NCBI GenBank assembly: GCA_963924565.1 | Contig: OZ004609.1 | Location: forward strand, 30,070,001-30,134,000 | Direction of reading: 5' to 3' | Source: Ascidiella aspersa | Taxonomy: Eukaryota | Length of the DNA: 64,000 nucleotides | Made by a program: the position numbers and the translations under genes | Notes under the pieces: generated by a model | Told to the model about the DNA's origin: nothing | Databases searched by the model: none | Seen by the model: the letters and a program-made list of their open reading frames with translations, nothing else | In this document: positions 5,394 through 45,200 of the stretch, piece by piece | Layout of the letters: each line of letters starts with the position of its first letter | Position numbering within the stretch: the stretch's first letter is position 1

Positions 5394-8300
5394 AGGACTC
5401 TTACACCCTGCATAAAAGCGCAAGCGGGGTCCCTAAGAGGGTTGGGCCAAGTACCACGACAACGTCATTGATGACGTTGGCTGCTTGAACAATGATGACG
5501 TGACGCTCGCGCTGTGTGTCGTCATCGAATTTTGTGACGTCACGCGCCGCCCTGCCGCGAGCCGCCGCGATCTCGTTAACCAAGCACTTACGGAACTCAC
5601 GTATTATTATTATGTCACCAACATCCGGCCGCAAGTTGTCTTTAAGCGAATATACGTGTAATAATTATTTGTTGTTTTCTACTCGAAAATCGGAATCTCG
5701 GAACATTTGAAAAGTGACCATTGTTATGACGTCATTACCATTGCGAGAGCTGGATTTACTCGTAACAGCTCCGTTTAAAAAAAAATAAAATGAGTTATTA
5801 TTTGTTATTTACCGTTAAGAAAATATTTTTAATAAATTATAGTAGCGCTGTTTAATATTTAGCTGTCACGTCATTCGTGACGTTATCTACCATCTTATAT
5901 GACGTCATTTTGCTATATTCTGCTCGAAGCGGGTAGGTATTTTTTCGTTTATGCACCCTTGCGCTCTCGCGTTCCGCTAACTGTGACGTCGAATTTGGTG
6001 TATGAATGACGTCACGGATAAATTATGTCATAGTGACGTTGTTTTGTGGTTCTTGTACATAGAAAAAGCGAATCTTCGGAACGGTTAGTCGTAATTGCGT
6101 CAGTCTATGTGACCGCCGCGAGCCATAAATGCATAATTGCGCCTTGTTATTATTTTTCACGAAATATTATCGTTTTCTGTATCGCCGTCACGCGCAGGGT
6201 GGCTCTCCGGACTTCAAAAATCGTCGTGCTACAAATAAAAAAATGAGAAAAGGAGGTAAAGTTTGAAATTAATTTACACACACTCGTAAATCCGTTGAAA
6301 TTCGGACGCGGCAAATAATTACTGGCGTCCAAAACGATTGCTCCTTGAGAGCGCTGAAAGTAGAAAAGCTGTGCCAATGAGTTGTTGTATTCGGAAATTA
6401 GTTGTTGTCTACAGGATTCATTCCTTGTCTACGGGATTTTAATGCGTTGTGTAGCCACCCTTGCGTTAAAAACGTTTTGTTCCGCGCTGTATTTATCACA
6501 TTTCTAGTTTTTTTTGCGTTGCGTCGCGTATATAGCCTCCTCTCATATCAATTTATCGTCGGTCGCTTCTTGAAAATACCCTCCTTCTCCTTGCGTCCAG
6601 TTAATTGGCCCTCGGAATCGATTTTCTTTGAAATCTGCCGACTTTTGATTGGCGCGTATCAACCAATGGCTATGCACTATTGGGTCACGTGATTTGTTGT
6701 GTGTCCGGTTTTGCGTTTAAAGTCTCAAGAAAGGCAGTTGTAATAATTATTTCTAGTTTTGTGTTAAACTTTACACGACGGTCCACCCTACAACGAAATT
6801 TTCTGTGTAATCAACTATTAACCTAAATTTTCGTTTTTGTTCATGAAAGCAGGTCTAATAAAGTATGATCAAGTGGTGCGTTAAAAAAATTGGTCACATA
6901 AATAGTTACATAAAGTTTTACCCTTATGAAAGCATATAAAATCGTTTATGTGGCTTTGGTATGCGAAAAAATATTAAACTAAACTGAGACGGAAAAAAAT
7001 AATAACCGTTTTCGATTTTTGCTTTCAAAGTGTTTTTAGGATCCTGACCCACTTTTTTTTGAAAAAGGATTTTTTTTTAATTTTTCTGATGCGACTAGGT
7101 TGCGGGAAAGCCTTTTTTAATTTTTAACCAATAAAATCGAAGCAGCTAAAGTACTTGGTAGCTTGACAGCATACAACTAAGAAAGTAAATGCATCTATTT
7201 TGTTTGTGCGTTTTCCGTTTGTTTGAGTGGTGCTAAGGCTGTGCGCAATTAGAAAAAAAAAATTGAAAGATTAATTGAAAATACGTATTAGGACAAAAAA
7301 AACAGATACGTTAAACAGCTGTATTATGCAAATTAATTTTTCTCCAAAATCATTACCAGTCTTGATTTGTGATCGTATGTTTTATTACAATCTTATTTTT
7401 AGTGCTCAATTAAAACAGTAAAAATGTTGGTATCTGTGTGTTTTTGGATACTCTTTTCATTTCAAAGTCATTTCGACACGTCTCAAATGGTAATTGCACA
7501 ACTTTTAATTGCTTTATGTGTTCTGTTGAAGCCTCCTTTAAAAACTATATGAATTTGCTTTTTGCCATCCTTCAGCTTTTGAATTAGATATTTTTGATAA
7601 AGAAAATCTCTCGCGATTTGCTATCCCTTCATGCGCGCTAGAGGGTATTTTTCTGTTTTTTGTTGTTGCTGTAATCTGTCAATTTTTACTCACGAACCTC
7701 GCGGCCGTCGTACAGTCGTAGAAATAAAGCCGCTCGGTTAACAAATAAAAACACCCTTAATTCTGTGCCAAAGCAACAACGGGCGCAAAATGTAAATCCG
7801 AAAAATTTACGCCGTGCAATTTCTTCTGCTTGCTTTGTAAAGCGCTGATCGGTGTATTTCCTTTCCATATATCTCCTTTTCTCCTTGTCTATCCTCTTTT
7901 GCTCGCTGATTTGACTCTTGAAAAGTCGTTGTTGGGTTCGGTCGTAAGGTCGCCGCCGCCAGTTATGTTGCGCAGGCGGGGCGAACGCAGCAGACGACCA
8001 TTTTACGCATGTTTAGTTTTCGAACGCGATATGTACAAAAAAATAAACGAAGGTACCACAAACGAAAAGTTTTCTCAAGACATATAAGTATATATTAATT
8101 AGATCATAGAGTTTCGCACAATTACGAGCCCCGATTTCTGTTATGTGAAGTCGCGAGGTCCCCAATCTTGTGCAAAAGCCTAAGCTGCTTTGTGATAATC
8201 AACGCCTGGTGCTGGTTGCATCGGGCGTCAAACGCAAAGCAACATAATCTATCTATTTTTACAATAATTTTATTAATGCTTAATGCTTTCCTAGCATGGC

Positions 8301-8902
8301 ATTCTGAATAGTTTGACCCAAAGAATTGAACAATCGTCATGAAAATGAAGTCCGTTTTTTAATGATTTAAGGCCGAAATCAGTATTGAGTAGCCCATATT
8401 GAATACTAAGGTTTATTTACCCCACGTTTGCTCGGCCTCTAGTCTTGCATGCATTTTGCCACAATAATTAGCTGAAAATAAACTAATGAATTTTTGGCCT
8501 CATTTAAAAGTAAATGTGCATAAATCGTCCATTTTCTGTCGATAAATTGCTTTCATTTTAACCTGAAATCCCATAAATCTTAGTAATTTTGGAAAAGTTT
8601 AAAGACTAGTATTGTTGCAATAAATGGCATTGTCCAATTTAGAAAAATAACCAACCAAATAAACACAAATACTACAAAAAATGCTATGTTGACTAACCGT
8701 TTAATATTTTTCTTAAGTAAAAGTTCAAGTTTAGAGTTGCTTTTCAACTGTTCAAACCAAAAAATTGCCTAAAACTAACCACTGCTTTAGGAACCAGAGT
8801 TTGTCAATTAAGAAACCCCATTAAGCGTTATCGCAAAATTTATTTAGCGTTATATTTTACAGAAGCAAGTTGTAGGGGCCTCCTCTTTTTAATGCGATAA
8901 AA

Positions 8903-9169
8903 ATGTCGAGCGAATCTGTACGAGGCACTCTGACGACACCCGGCGGCACAGTTGAGAATTTTGAAGCGCCGCTGTGTGGCGACACCGAAGATCTAAAGCA
9001 GGCAGTACTGACGATGCAAGGGCTGGTCGGTAAAAGTATTACCGAGAAAATCGAAGCGGCAAAAACAAACGAACCGGCGCGAAAAAAGAGCAAAAAGTCC
9101 GGAAAGATCGAAGAGGATGTTGCAGCGACCGAAGAAGAGACAGAGGCAGTGGAAGATCAGAGTTCATAA
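8903..9169 (+). CDS. Small protein, probable EKC/KEOPS complex subunit GON7 (C14orf142/LAGE3-partner-like)
   Basis: 88 aa, AAAATG start context, acceptor-like ttttacag ending 8862, AATAAA near 9652. Pattern: beta-hairpin (GTLTTPGGTVENF), amphipathic helix (LKQAVLTMQGLVGKSITEKIE), then basic/acidic tail, matching the fungal Gon7 pattern YxxPxG..F...LR..L..LQ..IN..LT..ME as recalled. Confidence 0.6.
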   Translation: MSSESVRGTLTTPGGTVENFEAPLCGDTEDLKQAVLTMQGLVGKSITEKIEAAKTNEPARKKSKKSGKIEEDVAATEEETEAVEDQSS

Positions 9170-12100
9170 TGCTGGTCGCGTTCCAAGTTGTAATCGTGGT
9201 TCTCGAAGTCAGCGTGTTCCTTCACGTTCATTTTTTCCGGGTCAGTTTCACTCCCGTCCTCGTGATGTTCGCCGGTGGGATGCTCTTCCTTGTACCTCGG
9301 ATCGTCGTGTGCTTGTTCGCCTGCACACAACAGTCCGGTTGTTAAGAATGTCCGATAAATGAAATACTTGTCCGATACTTTGGTGATTTCGGTGCCGATC
9401 CGCTAACGATTAATTTGCGCATTTCAGTCTTGTTTTGCGATCCAATGTAGAGTTTTACATCCTAAAAGTTTAAGTTTTTTCATAAAATTAAATTTAAGTT
9501 TGAAGGTTATAGACTTTGCCGCGCAAAGGAGTTTCAGCGTAATAATAACAACTATCCTTTTGGCCCAAATATTGGGATGAAACGCAAAGTATCGGACATA
9601 TGTAATACTATACCTTCGTGTGCTTTTTAAGCTTTTTTATATTTTGCGTAAAATAAAATAAACGCAATTTGCGTAGCTTGGTTTGTAATTTTTAGGATGT
9701 AGAAATACAAGTGCAGAAAAAGTGTTGTCAAAAACAGACACTTGTTACATATTTCGTCCCATGTTTAAGCGCTTTTTGCACCTTGCTTACACCTGATTAA
9801 AACCGGCATTTCAGCCCTATAAACATAACCTTTTTACCCTAAATTACGTGTTACCTGGAAAATAATTAACGAGTTTACAAAAAAGAAAGGCTTATTCTTG
9901 ATGCCGTAGCTGGTTTGCATTCAGGTATTAAAATATTTTTTGCTCTTTTCCAAAATATCGCGTATATGAATCCAAATATAATAGTCTACAAAGCGCAGAA
10001 CATTCCTTGTTTTGGAGCATGATGGTTGGAGGTTGTAGTAAGACGTAATAAGAAAATCAAAGCCCATACAGAAGTAGCCATCAATTTGAACGTTTCGAAT
10101 AACTCTTTATTCATTTGATGAATATTTCTTATTATTCCTTGTTTAGCTATGCAATTTCTTTAAGCAATGTTTGGAAATTAATCGGCTCACCCTCCTGGTG
10201 TAAAACGGCCTTGGCTAGGAACTCTTTCTCCTCCGCCTCCCACTTCGCTCTTCTCTCCTCCTCATCTTTGACGGTGTCGATGGGATGCATCTGATCGTGC
10301 CAGGAAGAGTCGTACTCGGCACCCCCTTCGTCCTCACTATGCTAAGGTACCATTTAAACATAAATTAGTATTAACATTGTTTTAAACCGGAATTTTATTT
10401 GGACAAACCCCGTCTTATTAAACTAAACGAAAGCCACTTGCAAACCGGGACATCAAATTAGATAGACCAACTTAAAATCCTCTTTGTCGCAAGATCTAGT
10501 GCCGACTTTTGTCCCTTTGTTGCAAAGTTGTCTATTTAGGAGCCATCCGGTTGGCTTTAAATTTAGAGATTTAGAATTGTTTCGAGATTCAGTAAAAAAA
10601 CTGAGGGAAGATCACTTAACAATAGCCTATACTTGTTTTTAGGTTAAGTCACTTCGATTTATTTGTTGTAGCGTGGCGCTAAAAGTATATGCTTTATTTC
10701 AAATCCTTTTTTGCCGAATTAAAAAAGTTAGTCCATTACAAGTAAGGCAACGTCTGCGCGTTTTGTGTTTTTGCCAAAAATAACTTAAATACTCACCGTT
10801 ATAACTTGATTGGCACCGTTTGTTTCAATAAATGCTTTTATGGACCCCACATCAACATTGCCGAGGTATTTCACACTCTAGAATGAAAAACAGTTTACGC
10901 ACATTATTTTGACGTGCAGTTAGTAAATCAGATGCAGCAAGTCAAGGCTCGAAAAATTAGTCGGCACAGGGACCGACGGTAGGCCTATGTCGGAGGTCGT
11001 GAGTTCAGAACTCACTGCGGGCAAGTTGTTCTAGCTTGGCCTTGCTTGCATCATTTTTCGACAGATTCGGTTAGTCTATTAAGGCTTCCGGAGTACTGTT
11101 TCAATGAAGTGTTTTAAATCGTTGATAAAAAACGACTTAAGAAAGACTTGGTTACAGTTGTTGTACACGTGTGTATTGTGTATCCTATGTATCTTTTATT
11201 TATTAAAATAGTTCAGATCAGAAGTTTTTAGTAGTTTAACAATAGGCCCACTGCGATTTTTGTAACAAAAAAGTGTAAAATTTTAGTTCCATAATTGCAC
11301 ACCGCATTTCGTTAGACAACAAAGACTTCTTAATAATAATTGAGTTATTGACGTCATAGCTGATTTATTTTTTATTTTTATACGCTTATTTAAAAATTTA
11401 GTAGGCCTAACACTAGCATATAGCCCCAGATCCATAAAAAACCTTAATCCGGCCCTGTAGGCCTATATACCTCTCCATTGGTTCGAAACATCTTGAAGCT
11501 TGGATACTTGATGTGAACGTCAATTTCTCCATCGTTTGTTGCCACGTTCATCTTGCCGAACGTGATGGTCTTGTTGCTTCTCATGTCTTTGGCCACCTGG
11601 TTGTAAACTCCCTGGGCCGAGTCCGAAGCGTCGTCGTTAGGTACGTCTGAATGAATGGTTAACATTTATTTTCTGGCCTAAATCGTCCGAATATTTTTGC
11701 TTCCTTAACTACTTAACCATCGGAAATGACTCCATTTTGGGTCAAGTTATTTGCGAAATACCAAGTCGCAGTCTAGCCTTTTTGCAAACAACCGTTCAAT
11801 TAAAGTTGTGCATTGGCTTCAAAACGAAAAGTCTATGCAAAAGTTGTTCGATTCAAAGTTTTGTTTAGACTTGTTTAAATAAAATTAACTTTTGCAATAC
11901 CAAACAATGTTTTAATGAAACCACTTCAAAAACAAACTGTGACTAAATTAGAAACAACCCTGGATGATAACGTAAACAAAACGACCTAATTTAGGTCATT
12001 CCACCTCACTAACTAAAGTCAAGTCAGTTAGAGTATAGTACAAAAACTTTGTTATCACACATTTGATAGCTTTACCTGAGAGTTTACAATATGATCTTCT

Positions 12101-15100
12101 ATCGAATTTAAACAAAAATCCCTAAGTGCTTGCATGATAGCCTACTCAACAGGGACAGTTTTCATAAGAAATTATGGCGCACCTAGAATCGGTTAACGTA
12201 TAGCGAGAAAAATGACATAAAACTTTACCAAATTTGTTTTGAAGCCGCACGCCATCTAACCGGATTTAATCAGCCATACTTACAATACATCATGAAGACC
12301 ACTCTCGTCTTGTCGTGGATGTAATTGTCATAAGTGGATCCCACTATGACCTTCACGTCATACATGTTCCAGTCTGTCGGCGGCTCATCGCTCCTAATGC
12401 TTCGCTGCGAAAGCATTAAAGTTAAGATTTTTGCTAACACACTTAAAAACATTGTTCAATGGAATATTAGTATTTATCACATGGCTTTTCATGTCATTAT
12501 TTTTAAGTTACCCATGTAAGTGCGCCAAAATTAGCAAGGATACATCTCTTTATTAACGCGTCAGTGCAATCTCATTCTGTGTTACTTCATTATATCGGTA
12601 AATCGCAATTTACTCAAAAAACATCATATTCTATATTCTTCAGTTGTGTATATGAAAATTAAACGGTATAGGCTACTTTGCCGTGATAGGCTTAAGGAAT
12701 ATATGCTACCATCGTACTCTAAACGAGGTGCTTAATTTTTGACGTTAGGCATATGTTTTATCGAATTTTCGCGACCTTCTAAATATATGTTAGCTTCAAA
12801 ACCTACAATAAAACGTCGGTAGCCTTTCAGCATAGGTAGGCTAAGGTTATAAAATTTTGCTCACGTAATGTCGTTTTCTGTTAGCGAAATCTCTTGAGCT
12901 TTTATTTTAAAAGAAAGTTGTTAGTCGTAATATTTTCTATTGTTTGCGAATCAATTAAATTCGTTTTTTTATTCAAAGGAACATCAAAGCTATATAGGAA
13001 CAATGATTGTTTATGAAAAATTGTTGATGATTAGGCCTATAGCATCTAGCCAAAGCGCGACCCCTAACCATCGCGGACCGCATTTCACAAGGTTCGAAAC
13101 TCACGTCGACTCTTCCCTCCATAACGTCGCTGGTGAACTTGGCAAAAGCGTCGGTCGAAAAGTCGCTCCTGGGCGGCTTGAAGCGGGAATGGTACTTGTC
13201 CACTTTGGTCATGCGATTGCAGGGCAACTCCTTGGTAGTGTCGATGTGGTAGAAGTTGAGGCTCTGACGAGAATCCTCGTGCGCAGTGTCAACGTGCACG
13301 AATACGACCTTCGAGTCCTGGCGAAAGGAGTCAGGTGAAACACTAGTTGTATAAAAGTATAACACAAAATATCAACTGTTGCTCGATTGAAAATACCTAT
13401 CCCTCGGCATTTTGAATTTTACCAACTACTTTGACAATATTCATCTTGCAGATAAGCTATGAGCATGATTTTATGACAAATTGACTAAAATCAAAAAAAA
13501 TTTTTTTCAAATAAAAATTGCAATCTTTTCAAAATATGGCTTTATGTTATTTTTTAAGGTAAAATAAACTCAATTTGGGTAATTGGTCGAACATTAGAGT
13601 TTTTGTTTTAACATATATGCAAAACCACCAAACATCATTCTAGTTAACAGCAATTCAAAAGAATTCTGCACTCGGCAGCCAATTGGGATAATTTTCGGAG
13701 TTACGTAACTGAACTGTGCTAATCAATTAAACAGCTCGGGTAAAATAATTAGAAGTTAAAGGCACATAGACAAAAAAACAGCAAAATATTTTCTGATTTT
13801 TCATTAGACTATGTCTTTTAAATCAGTTCATAGGAGACAGGGTAACAGGGTAACAGGATAACTTAATGTTGATCTTTTTGGTTAGAACTTACTTTGTCTT
13901 GGTGTCTTTAGGTATACAGCTACAATTGTGAAGTTTTTATTTACATATTTCAGTTTCACCTATACCTTATCTTACTCTAAATTTGTACCAAATTTAAGTC
14001 TATAATAGTACAATTGCTAGATCATACCTCCTAAAAAGTCTAATAGCGCCTTTTTACAACGTTACACCAGTGTAAATCGTTAGTCCTTTAATTTACTTAC
14101 ATTGGTTTGAAACTTTCTTGCCGCCTCCTTGAAATTACTGAAGGTTTCTTGATAGTTTCTATCTTTGCTAGACATGAACAGCAAGTGCTGGTAAATTTTG
14201 CCGGAATCGTAAATACGATGATTGTACTACAAAAAGAATAACAGAAAAATGATGAGTTTTATTAAAACAAACTGAATTTAAAGTGCTAAAAATATATTCG
14301 TATGCTGCCCAATTCAATCAGCAGTGGGAAGTGTGATAAAGAGATGCCTGAATGATATGGTTCAAAAGTTGTTACTTACACCGATTTGATTGTGTTTGTA
14401 GACGACGGGAACAGTTTCATAATCCACAAATTTCAGAAGCTCATTAAAGTTCGATGCGTCGCCTTTGAAAACCTCCTTGTTTCCGTCTTCAAACTAAAAC
14501 GAAAAGTTAGCACCAGATAAATTTAGTTCATTGGATAGTTCATTGGAAATCAGACAACAAAGCAATTTATCCTTGCGAACCAGCATTGTGGAAAACTACG
14601 ATTTTAAGTCTTTTTGTTTTTGTGTTTTTTTTTAATGTTTTTGAGTTTTGTATGGTCGCGAAAGATGTTGGATTGTTGGTGTTGCAAACAGACTTCTATA
14701 ATTTCCTTTCTTGTATTTATTTAGCCTACTTTATGGGTAACCTCCATTGTTTTAAAACCATAAAATGAACTTTAAATTCCCCCAAAAATCTTTTCGCTCC
14801 TTAATAACTTCTTACGTACATAAATCTACCTGTTATGTCACCAATCGCTACGTAAGTTGGTAAATCATGGAAACCTTGCATTTAATTTTTTTATGCTAGC
14901 AAATTGCTTCACTGCAATATTTCAAATGACATGGCTTGCTCAAAAGTATGCTCATTTAGAAAAAATGTACCAACTTCACCTTCTTGTAAACGGAAACTGA
15001 TCCACTGGTTAGCGAAAGCGTCCTCGCAATCTGTGCTGACGTCACAACCGCGAACCTGGGCAAGGTCATTTTGGGGTCGTAGACGAAATACTCGCTCACT

Positions 15101-17120
15101 TGGTAGAAGTTCTTGAAAGCGTCATCGGGCTTTTTCTGTGATGATCAAAATGTGAATTAAAACAGAATGACTGTACGATACACAGGTTGTATTTAACGTT
15201 TAGTATTTAGGTCGCCGCGAAAATAGGTTTAGAAGCACGGTATTGACTGGACAACGCCGTTTTGTTATAACGGAACTTCGGTATAGCGCTTACCCCAGGA
15301 AAGCACCCGACCACGACGCAGGTTTCCTCGCGAAGATCGTCCAGTTCCTTGGGGATGTTGATTATTAGGGGAACGTTCATAGCAAGTTTCACCCAAGCGT
15401 CGATGTGCTCGTTCGTTATCTTGCCTGAAACACAGTGTTACATTCCCACCGAATTGTCTTAATATGATATACCAAGATAAAAGAAAAAGAGCCAGTTAAG
15501 CTGTGGCGACAATTGAAAAGCGATTACACATTTATTTATTGTTATTAAGTCTGCGAAGACATAATTGCCTTTCCTTAATTTATAAATAACTAAATTTCAA
15601 GAACACACAGACACAGCATGGCAGTTTATGAATCTACCGGCTTTTGTAAATGTAGGCAATATATATTTAAAACACAAAACATAGTCTAACATAAAAAATG
15701 TTACCCACAAAACTGGATAACGCAACAAATACAACAAACACATACAGAATAGTCCGGGGTTTATAATGGTCCCCGTTCTCATGGGTTACAGAGCAGTCTT
15801 TGAGGGGCCACGCGAGTATAAAACTTTATTTTTGCTGCTAAAATTTGTCATTTTTTTATGACTTCGGACACCTCCCTTGTAACGTTCTGTAACGTTTTAA
15901 CGTGATCAGCGGGAACACAAGCAGTTAAAAGTACATAGAAGAAATGCAGGTTGAGAACCGCCGTAGTAGACAGTGACTATGTCGAATTTAAGAATACCCT
16001 ATCAAATCCCTCTTTACTGTAACGATGAACGCATTTGTCGCGACAAAAATGATTTGCTTAAATGTTTAAGTTCTTTACCGTGGTAGTCGAATCGACGCCC
16101 GTTCTTGAACAGCATGACCATGGGAAGTTGAAAAAGTGGGAATTTGCGCTGAATCTCTAGTTCCTTCTCAGTGTTGACTTTTGCAACGTGAACGTCCGGG
16201 TTCGACTTGTCCAGCGTTTCCTCCATGTACGTCATCACCTTTTCAGCGTCTTTGCTCTCCTTGTCCTTACCGACTGAAAACACAAAGATAACTTTCCATA
16301 TGAATATGCCGTTGCTGCCAGGCATTGTTTCAATTGTAGAATTGTTGTTCCGGCACCACATTCTAAACGACGAGGCGTCGGTACTTTAATAATATTTTGC
16401 CGGACAATTCTACAGTTATAACTTTCCTATTTTTTCATATAAAAACCAAAATTGTTGATCAGATTAAACAAATGCGTTAAAGTAACGAGTTAAAACGGTA
16501 GTAACTGGACTCAAATCTTAGACCGGAATGTTTTTGATTGAACATTATTCAAATGACCTGTATTCCATTTACGCATCAGGGTTTAAAGGTTTGCTATATT
16601 AACAGGTATTGTTTTGCTTTCCTCACTCTTTTTTGGTTCTGTTTTGCTTTCCTTTCCGTGTTTCCTTACCTTTTACAAGTTAAAAACGTGATATAAGTTT
16701 TTTTGTGACCTTAACTGCAAATTTGCACACCGATTAGTTTTAATAACATAATTAAATGTTCTGCTGGAATTTGATTTCATGACAGTCCCATTAACTATTG
16801 TCTAAAATACTGTGCAGTTTAGATATGGCCCAACACTCCTCCTCAGTTTGTAATGATTAGAAATAGTTTACTAGTTAAAATTCCGATAAAATAATGTTTT
16901 AAGATTATTTAGCGGTCTTTCTACCATGTTTAGGTGTTTAAGCATACTCACAGAAAAACACGAGAACGAACTTATACTTCATCAGTGCGGCGAAGAAAGA
17001 GTGATCGTCAAGGACAAGGACACCATTCTCCCTTGGATAAAACTCATTCTCCGTCCTTTTGCAATCAGCATTTCCCGCTAGCGCGACAATTAAAACGGCC
17101 AGTAACGCCACCGTCTTCAT
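9157..17120 (-). CDS. Non-catalytic protein disulfide isomerase family member (signal peptide, a-b-b'-x-a'-c), 598 aa
   Basis: 12 GT-AG exons: 17120-16952, 16273-16079, 15424-15294, 15135-14980, 14493-14380, 14226-14101, 13317-13105, 12404-12284, 11646-11471, 10877-10797, 10341-10191, 9320-9157 (1797 nt, phases consistent). PDI hallmarks: ENGVLVL, VAKVN, KFEDG, VVFVHVD, x-linker RSDEPPTDWN..VKVIVG, KMNVATND, cis-Pro loops LP/YP, C-terminal HYEL. Minus-strand AATAAA at 8839-8844. Confidence 0.9.
10011..10108. repeat. About 100-bp interspersed repeat, copy 1 (copy 2 at 26140-26237)
   Basis: tttggagcat(g/a)atggttggaggttgta...tcaaagcccatacagaagta...tttgaacgtttc.aataactcttt occurs in both introns with scattered substitutions. 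Confidence 0.85.
10960..11190 (+). mobile_element. 5'-degraded tRNA-derived SINE-like copy related to the 27-kb array
   Basis: ggaggtcgtgagttcagaactcactgcgggcaagttgttctag...tgcttgcatcat...acagattcggttagtct aligns with the units at 27.1-27.9 kb. Confidence 0.75.
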
Positions 17121-17215
17121 AACTTTATCTTTCTTAACAAATCAACGTTCTATCAACTCTCTTTGCATTAAATGTAGCTGCCTACTGCTGATCTGTAATA
17201 TATGCAGCTGCATAC

Positions 17216-17260
17216 ACGTGTAACGATTGGCTTACGGCACCCGTGTACATTTACGATTGG
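17216..17260 (-). promoter_or_regulatory. Two CCAAT boxes, one in an ERSE-like CCAAT-N9-ACACG arrangement, upstream of the PDI-like gene
   Basis: Minus strand 17260-17242 reads CCAAT cgtaaatgt ACACG (ERSE consensus CCAAT-N9-CCACG); a second CCAAT-cgtt-ACACG lies at 17230-17217. Confidence 0.5.
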
Positions 17261-18121
17261 GCGCGCGGCTAGTTATGAAGTGTTGCTTATCAAAACAGGA
17301 TTTTAGCAAGCATTTGTCATGACGTAGCCTTAATCATAACCCGGTAATCGAAGCACATTGTTAGTCGCTTAAAATTGCGCTTTTCCATCGCTGTTATGCT
17401 ACTATAATCATTTTAATTATTATGGTTAAAGGTTACGAAACTGTGGTGGTGCCGCGAAGGCAAGGCCTACACTTTTAAAACCAACCTATAAGTAAAACAG
17501 TCCATGGAATTAGTGGAACTATTTAGTATATCAGCATGTGCTTGATTTTTTTTAAGTGGGTTAACTTAAATGAGGCTGAGCATTTTCAGGCGTCAGCTAA
17601 ACTAGGGATGGCTCTATGTGCGACTCTTTAACCAGTTTCATGCGGCTATACATTCAGGTTGTATTCAGGTTTCAGTTTTTAAGGCTTGGTCTCTAACTGG
17701 TTTGCCAACCCCAATAAGTCTGAGCTGTGTAAGCTGTGGCATTTGGTGCTTAAAGTTGGCACCAAGTAAGAAAACTATTTTTTTACATTTTAACCTTATA
17801 TTAAATACGTAAAAAAAATAAATACAAAATGTGACGATCATTATGGTATAACCAAAGCGTACCAAGTGAACTTAGCGGTAAGGGAACACAGTTTTTTTCA
17901 AAAATAATGTACAAAAACTAACATAATCCAAACACAATAAATAAATAAATAAAATGTCGAAGAAAACATTTTTACAAAACGTATTTACACAAAACAAGCA
18001 TAATCAAAACAGCTTTATATAAAGCACAACGAAAACAGTCATAAAATAACTGTTGAAAACTGCGCTAATCGTAGCAGCCCTTAACAAGGCTGAAATCATT
18101 GTCACGAAAACCAGCGTTTTC

Positions 18122-19283
18122 CTAATTCTGAAAGTCTGCGAAATCGAGCATCAACATGTAGATCTCGACCATAAGGTCGCACGCATCCTTGAGGGAGGCG
18201 TCCTTTGCATCCACAACCAACCTCCCGTCGGCATGGACGACCGCCAACATCCTCTTTCGACCGAGGAAGATCAGTTGGCCTCGCATTTCCTCAATGTCCG
18301 GCTCGTAGATCATTTGAGCCGCGTCTGTGAGTGCAAGGCTTTGCAAACACACCGGAAAGCAAGCGTTGAAAAGCACGCGCCGTTTTTTGATTGTGAAGTC
18401 GCCAGGTTTGATGCTGCAGCCGTCAATTCCATTCTTCTTCAGCTGTTTTATGACGTAGGCGACGACTCTGGACTTTCTTCGAGCTGTTCCTGAGCGTGTT
18501 TTGGTCTTGACCCTCATTGCATTGTCGTTATACGTATCTATCCACAGCGATTGCGGACTTTGTCCTAAAATGCTCCAAGGAGAGGCATCGGAACTGGAAT
18601 CGCCACTCGACTGCGTGCTCGATTCCGATGACGAGGTTGTGACGTCATCGTCTGCGTAGTATCCGAGCTCGGGACTCCACCTCCCCTCCGAGCTGACGTC
18701 ACCGTGGAGGTCCGGCCATTCCTCGTGTTCCAGATCGGGCAAGATTCCCTCGTCTTCTTCTTCGTCCTCCGAAGAATGGCGCTCGGGACTTTCGGTTTTC
18801 GACAGCCTGAGTAAAAATTGCGCAATTTGAAAATGACGCGCATTGCGCCATGTATGAAATAAACAATGCAATTTGTAAAACATGAAGAGTGTTTCAAAAC
18901 GCGCTTATGTTAGACTTTGACAGAATTGCACCTCAGTTAGCTACACTGCACAAGTCTAATTCGGCCACTTTGTGCAATGACATGTACCTAATTATGTCAC
19001 TATATAAAACAAACAGACATGAAAGTTTTCGTATTGCACATTTAACTAAGGAGCAGTTTATGGATTTTGAAACCAAAAATAAACCTAATATTTGAAGTCT
19101 AATTATTTGTATCTAATATATGGTCACAAACAACCAATCTTAAAAACAAAACAAAAATAAGTATAAGGCTTTGCCTACAAATGTACTTTTAAAAAACATT
19201 TTGTATACAGACCTTTCCCAGTCTTTGTACAACGATTCTTGCGAATAAATGTGGAAAAAATCATCCTCATGCAATTCCGCCAT
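18122..19283 (-). CDS. Highly divergent TATA-binding-protein (TBP/TRF)-fold protein with acidic N-terminus, about 251 aa
   Basis: Exons 19283-19213 (MAELHEDDFFHIYSQESLYKDWER) and 18806-18122, phase-2 join. C-terminal half aligns to TBP repeat 2: DFTI~DFKI, FPVCLQSLALT~FPIRLEGLVLT, YEPD~YEPE, LIF~LIY, VHADGRLVV~IFVSGKVVL, EIYMLMLDF~NIYPILKGF. GILPDLEH resembles the core start GIVPQLQN. Exon 1 is less certain (donor gtctgt). Confidence 0.75.
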
Positions 19284-19525
19284 CGTAATTCAACTTTTTT
19301 TACTTAATAAATAACTATTGTCCAGCCCAGTAAAAACTAAATTCTGAAACACTGTGACAGTGGTTTCTAATCTGTAATAACTGGGCTAAAGTTGTTCAGT
19401 TTAGTGACTTGTAACTTACTCTAGCTACTAACGTTATTTTGGAAATGCTGTTTACGCAATTAACTATTTCCGGAAGTGTACTCGAGCCTAACTCCTGCTG
19501 AAATGACACGACTGACGGGCTCGCA

Positions 19526-19540
19526 GCTTTTATATAACGC
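19526..19540 (-). promoter_or_regulatory. TATA box of the TBP-like gene
   Basis: Minus strand gcgtTATATAAAAGc, followed by a plausible 5'-UTR intron 19419-19344 (gtaagt...tttcag). Confidence 0.6.
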
Positions 19541-20706
19541 GCAACTTTCGCAAAAAGTTACATGCTGCATTGTAAATTGGTAACTGAGAGGCTATTTTAG
19601 TTCAATTGCATAATTGTTTTGTCATTTTCCCGGGTACTTTCCCACGGGGTGTTTCTAATGGGCGCGTCCGGGCATTACCCTTTTTTGCTGTCTGCTGTGG
19701 CATGCCTAAACTTGCCCTTGATTCAGTTTTCAATACTTTTCGTTTTTTCACCAAAAACATATCATATGGGATCATTAGGTCAAGTTAACTACTGTATTGG
19801 GCACTTTGTAACGAAATAAAAACTCATCGTTGATTCTGTTGAAGCTTGAAAAACGTGGTTTATGAAATAAGTATAAAGCAAATCATATAAAGCGAATTGC
19901 GGTAATCACAATTGGGCTTTTGTTTAGTTTTGTTGGCCACACAACCGTTTCACTGTGAAAAAACTGCAAGCAATGTTCAAAATACGCGGCGTTCGCAGCC
20001 ACTTCTGCTTTATATACTCGCGTACAGAAAAAAGAAAAAAGCAACGCCATAGTTGCGCAATCAATTCTAGTTGCACTATAACGTACATACCGAACTGTGG
20101 AATTACATTGATTAAGGTAGAATGCTTCAGGACGAAAAGTCAGTGAGTGATAAAATGCAATATTTGCTTGCAAACTTAAGTAACGTTTTGTAAATTAATC
20201 CATTTGGCCCAATAGTTTTACTTCTTTGTGAATTTCGTCTGAACTGCAATAATGGTGTAGGCCTAATATATAAATCAGAGTGAAAGTAAACGATAAGTTT
20301 TCTTCAAATGCCCAAAGTTTTCGAAGTAGAAAAATGAACTATACAAACTTGAATTATTTTAAAAAACATAAGTCAACGGTTTGGTGGAAAATGTTGCAAT
20401 TTGGATTTCCTATTGTTTTTGTAATTATTTGACATACATCAGTCAGATTAACAAGAGTTGCTATAATTAAGCCTACCAGATTCTTTAATTGAATTTTATA
20501 AAAGAAATATAGCTTACACAACAGAAATATCTGTTTTAATGAAAGGTAAATTTAGTGCCTGATAAAAAATTGTGTTCATAGGGCATTTTTCTGTGGCTGA
20601 ACTATAACATACGTTTATAACTGTAACTATTCCTCGAAAACAATCGGTCTTTATTAAGACCATTTTAGTATGCAATGTCCAGCTGTAATCATTAAAAATG
20701 TTGTGC

Positions 20707-22482
20707 TCATTGAACAGAACTGCGCAGGACAATTCTTCCTTGGCTAAGTACAAATTCAGAGGAGTCAAATGAACTTTCGTTGTCATAAGTGTTGAAAGGC
20801 CCACTCTCGTTTGAGTTCGCGGTGGAAAGGTTTGAGTCGAGTTCCTGATTAAACCAATCCGGAAACTGCAAGGTGTGTTGGTCCAATGCCTTCGGATCCT
20901 TTCTAAAAAAAATTGGTGCCAAACAAAACAAAGCAAAGGTTTAAACCAAGTTTTTTTATGCTGTTTGCAAAAGCTTTGTAAAATTACAAGGAATATGCAA
21001 AGCAGTTAAGAGATATATAGACCTAGCATAACATAATTCAGCCTATTTGCTACTAATATAATAAAAATATCACATCTAACATAAACTTAAAAAATACCGA
21101 ACATTTCGAGAGTTTTTAATTACTACCAGTTTCGAATTTTTAGCCAATTTGAGTTTTAGTCAAGCAAATTAAAAAATATATTGTCGTAATAGACATTTAT
21201 ATTTCATTTTACCTGTCGTTTACTATGTTATCCGTTCCGTCATGAGATAGTAGACCGCTTACGACACTGCTCCAAGTTCTTTGAGAATCGTCACTAATAG
21301 TATAACAGGACGATTTTGAGTCGCTATTCACAAGGTTGGTATTTCTCCAAAGCCATTCATCGGATTTTTCCCTTAAATAATACAATCTTAAGGTATTAAT
21401 GAACTGTAGTCACCCCTCAGTAGTGTAGGTTTATATATATGTAAAATCGTTTGACACGTGGGATAAATCATCTTCAACCTTGACCGGTTATTCTAACATA
21501 AAAATCAGCTGTTGTTTTAGGAATAGTATAAATTGTAGGCGAACTGAAATTTAACTTAAATAAACCCATCCACGCCGTATCATCAAATTTCAGGTTGGTG
21601 TATTTAAAATTTTTGAACATTAAAGAGTTCTAATTAGCATACGAGAAATGCGACAAACAAGTAACACAATAAGTTTACCTGTTTTGACCAGCCAGAGATA
21701 CACCAGTAAAATTGTTATAAAATTCTGAGTCCAGAGAATCTGAATGTTTTCTTTTCCTAGAGTTCATTGACCTAACAAAAAAATTGGTTATCCTTTTAAC
21801 ATTACCAAAGACATGCATTTTTGTCGCATGCGACTTGCAAACAAGAACCTTTTCAGAAGGTAAAAATTTGCTCTACTTCAATTGGGGGTTCTTAAACTGG
21901 GATCCGTGGACCTTATGGAGGCGCTATACGTGACTAGTTTTAGGGGGTCCATATGAAGGTATAATTGAAATCTTGGTGCCTAATTAAAAAAATAGAATGA
22001 CTTTGAAAGTAAAAGGTTTATTTGAAAAAACGCTGATTAAATTTATTTAACCCGAAGGATATTTGGATTATGTCCGCCTTTTTTTTAGTTATGTCCGGGT
22101 AAAACAATGTTTAAAACATCCTGCCCTTAATCTAATTAATAGCCTACCGGTACTACAAAACCAACCGATTGCCTGTCCTGATGATGGGGTTATTTTCCGC
22201 AGCTGTTATTCTTTGTGAATCTACAACAGGGTAGTACCTGGCATCCGGGAAGCTTTGACAGGACATTTCTGAAATCGTGTCGTCGTCGGAACGCATTGCA
22301 ATGCTGCCGTAAGATTGACACGGCATGTCGGAAATAGTATCATCAGGAATGCTTTGCAAATTTATATTTAAAGACTTTGATTTGCCCTCTAATACACAAC
22401 TGACTTTCCAATGCTGTTCGGATCTGCTGCTGTGTTCTTGCTGGTTTATTGACACTTGAAAACTAAAATCGAATGAAGACAT
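20707..22482 (-). CDS. Orphan Ser/Asp-rich, probably disordered nuclear protein, 230 aa
   Basis: Exons 22482-22238, 21771-21679, 21371-21213, 20902-20707, all phase-2 joins, 693 nt open. AAAATG start, TATATAAAGC at 22620-22611, minus-strand AATAAA at 20650-20655, RKRKH NLS-like motif. Confidence 0.65.
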
Positions 22483-23941: not shown

Positions 23942-25591
23942 ATGGACATCAATTTAAAACTGCATTGTTGTATGCTGCTAATGGCAGTTGTAAGTCCATT
24001 GCATATTGTTGCAATCGAAACATTCCACGAATCCTCAACAATGTCGGTGATAAACAACAACCAGCTTTATTCCTACTTTAACTTCACCACAACCTTGGAA
24101 TTCCAGGAAAAATTTGTCGCAAACCACTACCAGCTCTTTCCTCGGTCCTTTGGAGAGCTGATGCAAAAATATCAAGTCGCTGAGTTGCACTTTACAATGA
24201 CCCAAGGGTTGTGGAGATACAATCAATGGGGCTATCCCCATTCACCCTCACCCACCGGGGCCCAACTGTGGGTCTGGTTCCAAAAGGACATCAAGGATGT
24301 TGACAAAAACTGGGTTGGTTTTACCAATGCACTGTCCGGTTTGTTTTGTGCCTCGTTAAACTTTATTAACAAAGCAGTTACCGTGTCACCAACTTTGTCG
24401 TTTCGTCCGTCTGGAGCTCTAAAGGGTGACGTTGATAATAAATTCCTGAGGTATGGTACTTTGTCTCGTGAAAACTTATGCACAGAGAACCTCACACCTT
24501 GGATGAAGCTGCTGCCTTGTGGGGCGAATGCCGGTCCTGCTTCCCTTCTAAACCCTAGTCAGTTGCATCACAGCCAGTATTTGGCGGTAGGCATTCATTT
24601 TAAAACTGTTTGTTTTGATGAGAAATGTGCCAGGACCTTTGTCCAACTGCAGCAAGACGTGTCTGCCGTCTTTGACCTTCGCACATCACTAGATAGCAAA
24701 CCAAATTTTAATTTCATGTCGGTGTTCTTGGTTAAAATCAAGCCGGCCTGTCCTCTGGCTAGTTCGAGCACTTTAAATATGAATATACCCAAAGAGGCAT
24801 CTGTGACACCAAAAATTAATGAACAGAAGTCCGGCTACATGACGTTGGACTTATTTGAATTACACAGCAGTGCAGACTTCAGTGTAAAGTGGAAGAAAAG
24901 GCCAATGCTTGCCATCCAAACTCCACCTGGAATTACCAGCCATTGTTATTTGACTGGCCTAGGTCTCAACGGTGGCTTAACTTGCTCATTGACAAACAAC
25001 ATGGACCACAATTTGACTGTTGTGTTCTTCCAGGTCTTTCCTTGGTTTCTATATACTAAGTTACACACACTGAAGATAGAAACCGCGACCGGGGCCAGGG
25101 TCCTACCGCATCGCACCCTCTTCACACCTGCTCGAATCCGAGAGTCACCCCACATATTGGAGGTGGTATTCCCGCTAGCGGCGAATTCTGTAACTGACCT
25201 TCAAATCCAGTTCACCAGGGGTTTTCTCAGATGGACAGAGCACCCTCCAGATGCAAATCACGGTTTCTACATAAGCCCTGCCACTGTTACGTTAAAGTCA
25301 GATGATTTAGATGTGCATGTACCCAATGGTAACAAGGTACAGCGCATTTACAGTGAGGCTCTGCTGATCAACATACCAGTTCCAGACTTTTCAATGCCCT
25401 ACAATGTTATTTGCCTGGTGTGCACTGTCATTGCAGTTGCATTTGGGTCTCTGCATAACTTTACCACCAGAAGGCTTCAAATGGTTTCTCCCAACAAGCC
25501 CAGTGCCTTGAAAGAAATGTTAAATAAACTGCTTGGTTTCTTTAAAAAGACAAAACCGTCAAAACCTGTTGATGAAAAGAAGACCGATTGA
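23942..25591 (+). CDS. PIGT: GPI transamidase component PIG-T (GPI16), single coding exon
   Basis: 549-aa ORF with signal peptide, HYQLFPRSFGE, NALSGLFCASLNFI, RENLCTENLTPWMKLLPC, EHPPDANHGF, PDFSMPYNVICL followed by a TM segment, and C-terminal KKTD (KKxx ER retrieval). Confidence 0.97.
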   Translation: MDINLKLHCCMLLMAVVSPLHIVAIETFHESSTMSVINNNQLYSYFNFTTTLEFQEKFVANHYQLFPRSFGELMQKYQVAELHFTMTQGLWRYNQWGYPHSPSPTGAQLWVWFQKDIKDVDKNWVGFTNALSGLFCASLNFINKAVTVSPTLSFRPSGALKGDVDNKFLRYGTLSRENLCTENLTPWMKLLPCGANAGPASLLNPSQLHHSQYLAVGIHFKTVCFDEKCARTFVQLQQDVSAVFDLRTSLDSKPNFNFMSVFLVKIKPACPLASSSTLNMNIPKEASVTPKINEQKSGYMTLDLFELHSSADFSVKWKKRPMLAIQTPPGITSHCYLTGLGLNGGLTCSLTNNMDHNLTVVFFQVFPWFLYTKLHTLKIETATGARVLPHRTLFTPARIRESPHILEVVFPLAANSVTDLQIQFTRGFLRWTEHPPDANHGFYISPATVTLKSDDLDVHVPNGNKVQRIYSEALLINIPVPDFSMPYNVICLVCTVIAVAFGSLHNFTTRRLQMVSPNKPSALKEMLNKLLGFFKKTKPSKPVDEKKTD

Positions 25592-42200: not shown

Positions 42201-45200
42201 ATGGACGCTGCAATAGCGGCCAGCCGAAACGCCTCATTCCTTTCGCCGCATCTGCAACGAACGGCGGGCCGGCAAGTTGAAAAGTCCGGCGGGATACCGG
42301 CGCCGGAACCCGAGGTCGCCCACCCCACGTGGAATCGGTCATGTTGGCCAGAATGGGCGTTCGCATTTCCCGCTTGGGGAGCGGCCGCCTACCCGATGTC
42401 CAGCGGCAACCAGCAACAGCAACAGCAGCAGCAACATGCAGAGTTGTATTCGCGCATTCTGGAGCTGCATCGCATTGCTGCTCTGCGGCAACGAATGAAC
42501 AATTTGACGGCAGGCGGCCTTGACCTTACACAGGGAAATTTTATAAGAAGCTTGGAAGAGCAAAATGCGGCAACAGTTGGCGAAACGCAAGCCTCTTCTG
42601 TCGGAAGCAGCCAACGATGCCAGGCGCACTGCTCAGCTGGCCTCAAGTCGCCCTATTCGCCCCATTCGAGTTCCGATTCGACTGCTAATAACGCCCCCGC
42701 TGCCCCTGACTCCCGCTCTTGCGACTCTGGAAGTAAAGAGGCCCCCGATGAGGTCCCTTTCCTCAAGTTTGGGGTGAGGGCGATCCTGGCCAAACGCCCC
42801 TCGTCCAGCGCTTGCTCACCCCCAAGCAAAGGTAGGCGACTTGCTCACCCTTTCAACGTGAATAGTTTTGTCTTTTGGTGGCAAATTTCGCAACGAAACA
42901 AATAAACCAGAGGTTTTTAAACTTTTTTACCACCGTAGGCAAAAACAACGTTTCTTCAAAAAATAGACTTCTTAGATATATACTAAAATTTCAATTAGGC
43001 CTACATGGACCCCCTAACACTATTTCACGGGCTTCCAACGGGTCGATGGGCCCCTGGTTAACAACCAATAAAATAAACGAAACCTGCGTTTCCTTTGTTC
43101 CGGATTATTTGTCCCATCTGTGTCATTATCTGTGAGGTTGGATTTCATTTTGGTCGAAAGCTTTTTAATTAACAGGAGTCTGGATTTGCTTGCAAGCACC
43201 GGGATTTGGTTTAAAATCATAGATATGAATTCGTTTTAATAAACTATTATAACTTGCCATCTACCACTTTGCGGACGTGAATCTTATACACATTGTAGCA
43301 GTGTATTTTTTAAGAAGATTTTAGGGACCGAAACGGCCTCCTAAATTTATTAACGTTTTCCTTCTTTTGTAACTAACTCAGGCAGTTGATAATAGTGATA
43401 AATAGTCGTTGTTAAGCGGGTCGTTGTGGTCTTTATTTTTCGGTAAAGTTTTCAAACGTCGCTACTAAAATTGAATAAACTTTACTGATACAGGAAATGT
43501 TATTTTTTGCAATCTATCTGATGTTTAAGGGCTGCTTTTTTCGTGACCCTGTTTATCCTTAGTTTCAATCAAACGTTAGTTATGTAAATAGCAATGCATG
43601 TTCGATAGGCATTTCCAAAATTCGCATTGTACTGTTGTTCGTGGTTTGTCATTCACGCACAAAATACAGCAATTTTATTTGGTATTGAGTTTACGTGCCT
43701 GTCAATATTTATTTGCAAAAAGGGCAAACATGCGTCTTCACCACATCTCAATTTGTCGGCCATTTTTATTTTCCCGACGCCGTGGTATAGCCTTGCTGTC
43801 TCCTGAGAAACAATTTTACAATTTTTTTGTTTAAACACAAGTTTAACTGTGGTAAATCGGTAAATATTAAGCCATAACACTGCTCTCTAATAGTCTTTCA
43901 TGGAGGGAAATCTCATTTTCAACAAGGCAAACATCCATATTTGCTCAAATAGCTCTTGTGTGCGCTCGAAATGGATTGCTCACTTGAGCTTCGTTCTTGT
44001 TTCGGAAACTTGCCTTTTGCGCTCGCGTTTATAAGTCCTTTTAAATAACCCAGATTAACGACTGCGAAATAATTATTATCTGTGATTTTTGACTTGTAGT
44101 GGAGATAGAATAAATTTTCCAATTATACGAATGTTTGTTAATAGGAAAAATTAACGAGCATTATTAAACCATCTTAGTTTCTGTTAGTTTATTTTGTGCC
44201 ACTGTCTTTTTTATACAAAAACGCAATCGGTATTCTAATTAATGAATAAATAAATAGTTTCGAATTCGCTTTATTTAACACATATGCTGAAATTGGGCTG
44301 TGTCAAGTAAAAACCTATATTTCCATCAAGCAAAAATTTTTTTTTTTCGCCCATATAATACCATTGAAATACAAACATCATCTTGCAAAAAAATGCACAG
44401 CTCTTTTTCAAAAGTGCACCCCTCTTCAATGCCCTGTTTTCGACTCGTCTCTCACCATTCGGCCTTATAGCAAGTCTGAAATGTCGCCACTTATTAAACC
44501 TTGCTTATGTCGCTCCCCGCAAAAACCTTTACGCCTTGACTCGAAAGCGTTGTAAGGTTTTTCATCCTCCGCTAATTTGGTTCCATGTCAGGCGCTGCTT
44601 TTGAATGTTTCTGCGGCTTTTTACACTTATCGAGTGGAGTGCTACCAGTTGGATTAAACAGTGTTTTCTCAACCCTTTGAACACATTGCCAAGGATACTT
44701 TGATTTGATGGTAATTCAGTTTAAAAGTTTTTCTGTTTTTTTTTAATCTGAACACGGTGTACTAGGTAACAAGTTCAAAAGGACATTGATCTTTTTAATA
44801 TATGGTCATGAGAAAAACACTATTCGGTTACTGCAACGCTGGGCACTTATTTTTTATACGGGCACCATAAGAAACACAAATTGTCTTTTAAAGGCCGGGT
44901 AAAAATGAAATTTGAAATGCAAATAATATAAAGCTTTATTCGTTTTAAACGAAAACTGTAAATACCTTGTTTTGACAAGCTGGCAAGAGTCAGAGTACAC
45001 GACGATGCCCTACAAGCGTAATTTGTATTATAAAATATTCTCAAAAAGTAAAGGCTTTATTTTGTTTGAAAATGCTTTTTGAAAAATACCGCGGGTTGTA
45101 GTTTGCCCAGGCCTGGGTTGGTGACAAGTGATAGCAAGTATATTACTTCTTCATTAGGTGTAAGCTTACTAGTGTTTGAGTGCATGTTTTATTACTCCGA

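Follow-up and report, generated by a model that had tools for sequence, protein, structure and literature searches.

A highly derived candidate descendant of TBP, comprising little more than one repeat behind an acidic tail, in the ascidian Ascidiella aspersa

RESULTS

Gene structure, transcription and neighborhood

In the window (the whole stretch of Ascidiella aspersa DNA analyzed here, 64,000 nucleotides long), an open reading frame (ORF) of 253 codons runs from ATG to stop on the minus strand at 18122-18883 and supplies most of the coding sequence of a candidate gene with two exons, the first of which carries its ATG at 19283 (Table 1). The spliced product has ~251 aa, of which 227 come from exon 2; residue numbers given throughout (e.g., Met200 and His217) follow the 253-codon ORF. 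The gene is present as a single copy in the 308-Mb assembly. The stop-free stretch around the ORF extends over 260 codons. When the window was shuffled 40 times, its longest open run averaged 150 codons and never exceeded 214. The probability of 253 open codons arising by chance is ~5e-6 at the base composition of the ORF itself, and the estimates made span 5e-6 to 6e-8. The GC content of the ORF is 0.51, with a GC3 of 0.61, versus ~0.38 for the window.

Four public runs from the same species (X1 to X4) were mapped onto positions 15800-20800. X1 and X3, with even coverage of this region at depths of 60-100, have the character of DNA runs. Coverage by X2 is confined to 17976-18805 and 19212-19376, apart from a high-copy repeat around 16300 and a faint signal at 19825-19957, and one X2 contig links 18805 to 19212, skipping 406 bases; this joint is absent from both X1 and X3. 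The record of X2 bears no RNA label, and, because of the exon-only coverage pattern and the spliced joint, we infer that X2 is a transcript assembly. The splice keeps the frame: the last two bases of exon 1, together with base 18806, form an Arg codon that corresponds to ORF residue 26. The ATG at 19283 has an A at -3 and a G at +4, and the covered 5′ UTR is free of upstream ATGs. An earlier note, made from the letters of the window, had delimited a gene at 18122-19283 and had proposed UTRs for it; its start at 19283 is supported by the X2 joint with the frame kept, and the UTRs are directly visible in the transcript contigs. The splice signal also places transcription on the minus strand, that of the candidate, and not on the strand of an antisense ORF of 146 codons (18053-18493, plus strand), which lies inside the candidate's coding exon and is probably a by-product of the codon usage of the sense frame. 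In X4, the sole run recorded as RNA, zero reads fell on the candidate gene in the 6% of the run that was read; therefore, its expression is not both ubiquitous and high.

All three polymorphisms among individuals listed inside the ORF are synonymous and occupy third codon positions (18227 in D219, 18275 in Q203, and 18464 in V140), and the polymorphisms listed include no indels within the gene, compared with many in its flanks. The synonymous changes are suggestive of a maintained frame, three SNPs being a tiny sample. Elsewhere in the mapped region, word depth at 16301-16467 leaps from ~60-100 to 7,000-16,000 in the DNA runs X1 and X3, while it reaches 279 in X2; many loose ends fall at 16299-16355. 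The segment represents a short repeat of very high copy number within the neighboring PDI-like gene region.

About 5 kb from the candidate, at 23942-25591 on the plus strand, lies a single-exon gene of 549 codons for the GPI transamidase subunit PIG-T. Its product is 56% identical to PIG-T of Clavelina, 52% to that of Ciona and 50% to that of Styela, and the best identity overall (63%) is to host contigs in metagenomes. Those contigs (L010-L013; ENA ERZ27241785/86/99 and JGI 3300027611) are 20-58 kb pieces of a related ascidian in metagenome assemblies, and in them, as in Clavelina (L014), Tcf25 follows downstream of PIG-T. Farther along the window, an ORF of 234 codons (42201-42905, plus strand) contains a poly-Gln stretch and ends in a tail rich in Ser; it resembles the opening exon of a gene for a transcription factor.

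Table 1. Coordinates of the candidate gene and of the predicted parts of its product (positions in the window)
Feature	Position	Strand	Basis and remarks
Exon 1	19213..19376	-	X2 contig 19233-19376 and joint at 19212
5′ UTR in exon 1, at least 93 nt	19284-19376	-	X2 transcript-like contigs
Coding part of exon 1, 71 bases (23 codons plus 2 bases)	19283 to 19213	-	Acidic/aromatic peptide
Intron, 406 bases, GT..AG	18807..19212	-	Joint 18805->19212, CT..AC (cut +1), in X2 only
Exon 2	17976..18806	-	X2 contigs tiling 17976-18805; ORF
Coding part of exon 2	18125-18806	-	Stop at 18122-18124
3′ UTR, reaching at least 17976	in exon 2	-	X2 contigs
Acidic, Ser-rich region	18509..18805	-	ORF residues 27-125; net charge -21, 21% Ser, several Trp/Tyr/Leu
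Predicted basic helix, putative counterpart of helix H2 of TBP repeat 1	18428..18508	-	Residues 126-152
Putative degenerate TBP repeat 2	18134..18409	-	Residues 159-250; phmmer against PDB, Foldseek, Atlas features, exon-wise tests, secondary structure
Stirrup motif YEPDIEEM	18284..18307	-	Residues 193-200; alignments; putative counterpart of TBP YEPELF plus two extra residues

Similarity of the C-terminal domain to TBP

Searches were made with the ORF or exon 2 (227 of the 251 residues of the product) or with residues 125-253, and each similarity measure taken alone falls short of the usual line of significance. In a phmmer search of PDB sequences, 14 of the 15 matches at E<=10 were TBPs of plants, animals and fungi (E of 0.6-2.4), spanning residues 156-250 against the whole of repeat 2; the best aligned query residues 159-250 with Arabidopsis TBP 99-187 (E of 0.6), and the one remaining match was a designed repeat protein. 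Two AlphaFold runs were made free of alignments (mean pLDDT of 45-48). A check of the fold by Foldseek, as the earlier note had advised, returned TBP structures as the best matches (E of 0.03, probability up to 0.84), the model used being a poor one with a mean pLDDT of 45. A structure search by VIA, which is independent of Foldseek, aligned 85-89 residues with TBP at Z of 5.5-6.2, level with KH and other small alpha+beta domains (Z of 5-7), all of which are below the Z of 8 that the tool treats as meaningful. By language-model features (Atlas), residues 125-253 reached a score of 0.91 with TBP clusters, having 179-185 of 256 features in common with them, and 26 of the 30 nearest clusters belonged to the TBP set; the score of the whole protein was 0.79.

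The candidate was also compared with the individual exons of the TBP gene of this genome. Residues 134-186 match exon 2 of that gene (z of 3.5, p of 0.007; BLASTP E of 0.008) and residues 193-224 match exon 3 (z of 3.5, p of 0.009), and the two matches are adjacent and collinear; with the PDB alignments taken in, collinearity with TBP spans residues ~134-250. Both scores together were reached by none of 20,000 shuffles and by none of 734 windows of unrelated real proteins, and the reversed candidate sequence scored at background. The model elements (helices at 132-150, 177-192 and 231-252; strands at 163-172, 204-208, 212-216 and 222-225) coincide, under the sequence alignment, one-to-one with H2, S1′, H1′, S2′, S3′, S4′ and H2′ of TBP, such that residues 159-250 are predicted, in a low-confidence model, to keep the TBP order S1-H1-S2-S3-S4-H2. 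The helix predicted at 132-150 (pLDDT of 60-75) has as its aligned partner the '...RLAARKYARVVQKL' helix in the TBP of this genome, and residues 126-172 carry a net charge of +13.

Profile searches were negative. No Pfam family, PF00352 included, matched the whole protein or any of four pieces of it at E<=10, and a whole-genome scan with PF00352, whose curated cut-off is 22.9 bits, found TBP and TRF2 and not the candidate locus, which falls below that cut-off. Similarity between residues 27-125 and exon 1 of this genome's TBP was likewise absent (p of 0.61); in the alignment-free model, this region has almost no secondary structure and is predicted to be disordered (pLDDT <50).

On these comparisons, the C-terminal domain very probably descends from TBP. 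The collinearity with the TBP core that had been claimed for the last ~130 aa holds over residues ~134-250, i.e., H2 of repeat 1 and repeat 2. For the earlier part of repeat 1, the proposed remnants, GILPDL for GIVPQL and TYNDN for IFSSG, find no statistical support, the N-terminal part giving the p of 0.61 noted above against TBP exon 1. The acidic, Ser-rich region that had been described as disrupting repeat 1 is borne out by its composition over residues 27-125 (Table 1). As judged from these alignments, an acidic tail is followed in this protein by roughly one and a quarter TBP repeats, and a two-repeat saddle is not found. The earlier label of a TBP-related factor is apt insofar as descent from TBP is very probable; if it is taken to mean a two-repeat saddle such as TRF1-3, that label overstated the case, since no more than this share of the TBP core could be detected.

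Residues kept and lost

Compared with Arabidopsis TBP and with the TBP of this genome, the stirrup Y-E-P-E-L is kept as Y193-E-P-D-I197, after which two residues are inserted. Other landmarks retained are the D-F before S1′, the F-P that opens H1′, the Gly after S3′, and the I-Y..L..F pattern of the last helix. The residues that read DNA have fared differently: of the intercalating Phe residues of repeat 2, the first is replaced by Met200 and the second by His217, the groove-contacting Asn has become Lys167 within I-K-K-R-R, and a Thr has become Asp225. Asp225 and Asp219 are on or near the DNA-facing side, where TBP has Thr and Ser. The DNA-reading positions of repeat 1 are unalignable. The survival of the stirrup, and the substitutions of ELFPG by DIEEMRG, IFVSG by VHADG and IQNMV by IKKRR, thus appear in the alignments as they had been described. 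The roles of the four Phe and of the other TATA-reading residues in TBP have been reviewed previously (PMC3142196). Because half of the saddle is gone and the reading residues of repeat 2 are replaced, TATA binding of the TBP kind appears to be excluded.

Origin and the TBP family of this genome

TBP is among the most conserved of eukaryotic proteins, and one TBP plus one TRF2 is the usual invertebrate set. This genome contains a single canonical TBP gene (C1:15.03 Mb) alongside a single TRF2/TLF gene (C4:17.67 Mb), each split into several exons. The core of its TBP is divided among at least four exons, with breaks at NPK|RFAAV, QFS|SYEPE and LTG|AKV; in the candidate, the corresponding sites lie within the uninterrupted sequence of exon 2, i.e., the parental introns are absent. 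The exons of this genome's TRF2 match the candidate more weakly (z of 0.3 and 1.6) than those of TBP (3.5 each). The single-exon core, together with the fact that TBP is matched better than TRF2, makes it most likely, on sequence grounds, that the candidate arose as a retrocopy or intron-less duplicate of TBP, and not of TRF2, and that its 5′ exon was gained later. A retrocopy origin, at which the single-exon core had already hinted, fits this arrangement; in a copy of this age, neither a poly(A) remnant nor target-site duplications would be expected. Nesting in a described TRF clade had been named as a finding that would speak against a new factor; orthology to the metazoan TRF2 clade is not indicated, given the separate TRF2 gene and its weaker scores in the exon-wise comparison.

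A third PF00352 match, at C9:19421655-19421786 (21 bits), was rejected as a family member: it contains stops, lies in no ORF, and is either a chance match or a decayed TBP fragment. Split-exon genes for TFIIB (C9:9.60 Mb) and BRF1 (C1:35.23 Mb) were also located.

Search for relatives

Both the complete ORF and its residues 125-253, used as queries against a word-indexed protein library, gave zero matches, although Ciona proteins are present in the libraries searched (a Ciona PIG-T matched there). An exhaustive phmmer search of 1.84 billion representative proteins returned only a spurious multi-repeat protein (P0001), an exact-sequence look-up of the candidate found no record, and pattern scans of metagenome and viral contigs yielded zero relatives. 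Nothing was found by tblastn of the candidate against the PIG-T loci and their 10-kb flanks in the related ascidian (L010-L013, at 63% identity) and in Clavelina (L014, at 56%), and the upstream gene content differs from that at the candidate's locus. Since the nearest sampled relatives are distant (50-63% identical even in PIG-T) and the library threshold is ~45 bits, a fast-evolving orthologue could escape detection, and restriction of the gene to one lineage is unproven. In the literature, no tunicate gene of this kind was found described; the only trace is a Ciona EST labeled "TBP-like" that a figure legend names without comment, entered as a third Ciona family member ("ciTBP-like", EST BW175023) in the tree of Akhtar and Veenstra (2011; PMC3142196).

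DISCUSSION

Comparison with known TBP-family proteins

The predicted layout of the candidate follows that of the C-terminal part of TBP, in the order H2 of repeat 1, linker, S1′-H1′-S2′-stirrup-S3′-S4′-H2′. Unlike TBP, the candidate has an acidic, Ser-rich stretch where the first four-fifths of repeat 1 would be and are undetectable, its stirrup is longer by two residues, and its core occupies one exon versus at least four. To our knowledge, the known TBP paralogues TRF1, TRF2 and TRF3 all retain the two-repeat saddle. TRF2 (also TLF or TBPL1) does not bind the TATA box and has lost intercalating Phe residues, and it still binds TFIIA and TFIIB (PMC3142196). The candidate resembles it in the loss of the intercalating Phe and is likewise predicted not to bind TATA; in contrast to the candidate, TRF2 has two full repeats, is ~40% identical to TBP, and occurs in all metazoans.

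Monopartite TBP-domain proteins of Archaea, such as halobacterial TbpA, consist of a single TBP domain that can function alone (PMC3597702). The candidate may be likened to them, by description only, in having a single functional-looking TBP domain, whereas the archaeal proteins are ancient and have no acidic tail; the candidate appears to have become monopartite secondarily, via decay of repeat 1. The Ciona EST BW175023 offers another parallel, as it also represents an ascidian member of the TBP family beyond TBP and TLF. For the N-terminal half, the TAND region of TAF1, an acidic, aromatic-studded inhibitor of TBP, may offer a likeness that extends to general character only (marked acidity, interspersed with Trp, Tyr, Phe and Leu); such a composition is common to many acidic disordered regions.

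Preferred reading and proposed mechanism

Taken together, the most likely account of the locus is a real, expressed and highly derived descendant of TBP, and there is a high, if not complete, expectation that the gene is functional. As to what it does, the best explanation overall, which we hold to be somewhat better than an even proposition, is a TBP-derived protein of two parts that would act as a modulator or decoy of TFIIB-family factors. After a copy of TBP had been made, its first repeat would have eroded into the acidic tail. The surfaces that seem best kept are the C-terminal stirrup, with YEP-D-I for YEP-E-L, and the basic helix. In TBP, this stirrup contacts TFIIB and BRF-type cyclin folds; its contact with TFIIB is established by crystal structures of TBP-TFIIB-DNA complexes, such as 1vol and 1c9b, listed among the PDB and Foldseek entries. 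Because the stirrup and the basic helix are kept and the DNA-reading residues are lost, a protein-protein activity would be the most likely one, in which TFIIB-family factors or other partners of TBP would be bound without TATA DNA. The protein would then modulate the assembly of initiation complexes, or serve as a decoy in it, at certain stages or in certain tissues, with the acidic tail serving as an effector or auto-inhibitory region. This modulator or decoy mechanism, taken as a specific claim, is put forward tentatively and has less than an even chance of being right.

A bolder version can be outlined, to which we give only a minor share of our expectation: a metazoan "half-TBP" that discarded DNA reading and one repeat, kept the stirrup, and turned the dead repeat 1 into a TAND-like tail. 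Such a protein might be soluble and confined to certain stages; as a decoy or adaptor, it would titrate factors of the TFIIB family, or TBP itself, and thereby switch initiation programs in the ascidian germ line or embryos.

Alternative explanations

The alternative that survives best, although we regard it as rather unlikely, is that the protein is still a nucleic-acid binder, contacting DNA or RNA without TATA specificity through the repeat and the basic helix. It might do so by dimerizing or by pairing with a second half-saddle, and the acidic tail would regulate binding by masking the basic face. The strongly positive charge of residues 126-172 speaks for such binding, as do the Lys-Lys-Arg-Arg now found in the strand that carries the groove-contacting Asn of TBP and the precedent of single TBP domains that can be functional alone (PMC3597702). 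However, the two Asp residues, Asp225 and Asp219, are on or near the same face, in place of the Thr and Ser of TBP, and K-K-R-R could equally well be a nuclear localization signal.

It is improbable that the locus is an orphan gene whose resemblance to TBP is due to chance, its C-terminal domain being another small alpha+beta fold unrelated to transcription initiation. Such a reading can point to the absence of any single test that is conventionally significant, to the tie of TBP with KH and other alpha+beta domains in the VIA search, and to the absence of homologues among the 1.84 billion representative proteins. Against it, three differently built methods converge on TBP among thousands of families, the match is collinear over two consecutive TBP exons at scores that none of the shuffles attained jointly, and the alignment sets the predicted strands and helices on the elements of TBP.

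A transcribed, functionless retro-pseudogene of TBP that by luck is still open is less probable still, even though the core lies in a single exon, the divergence from an otherwise nearly invariant protein is extreme, and the sampled part of X4 held no reads, because neutral sequence at such divergence would hold stops (the chance of 253 open codons being that given above), an acquired upstream exon is spliced in frame, all three listed SNPs are synonymous, and GC3 is raised; the earlier judgment that this is not a dead pseudogene therefore stands, and a dead copy is unlikely.

Significance

With these alternatives weighed, the favored reading remains that of a TBP-derived modulator or decoy of TFIIB-family factors. 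If the gene is maintained and expressed, it would amount to a natural separation-of-function allele of TBP, in which partner binding is kept and DNA binding is lost. If this is true, it would provide a handle on the titration of initiation factors in the development of a chordate with a compact, fast-evolving genome, and it would represent a clear case in which a new regulator was born as a retrocopied core transcription factor partly decayed.
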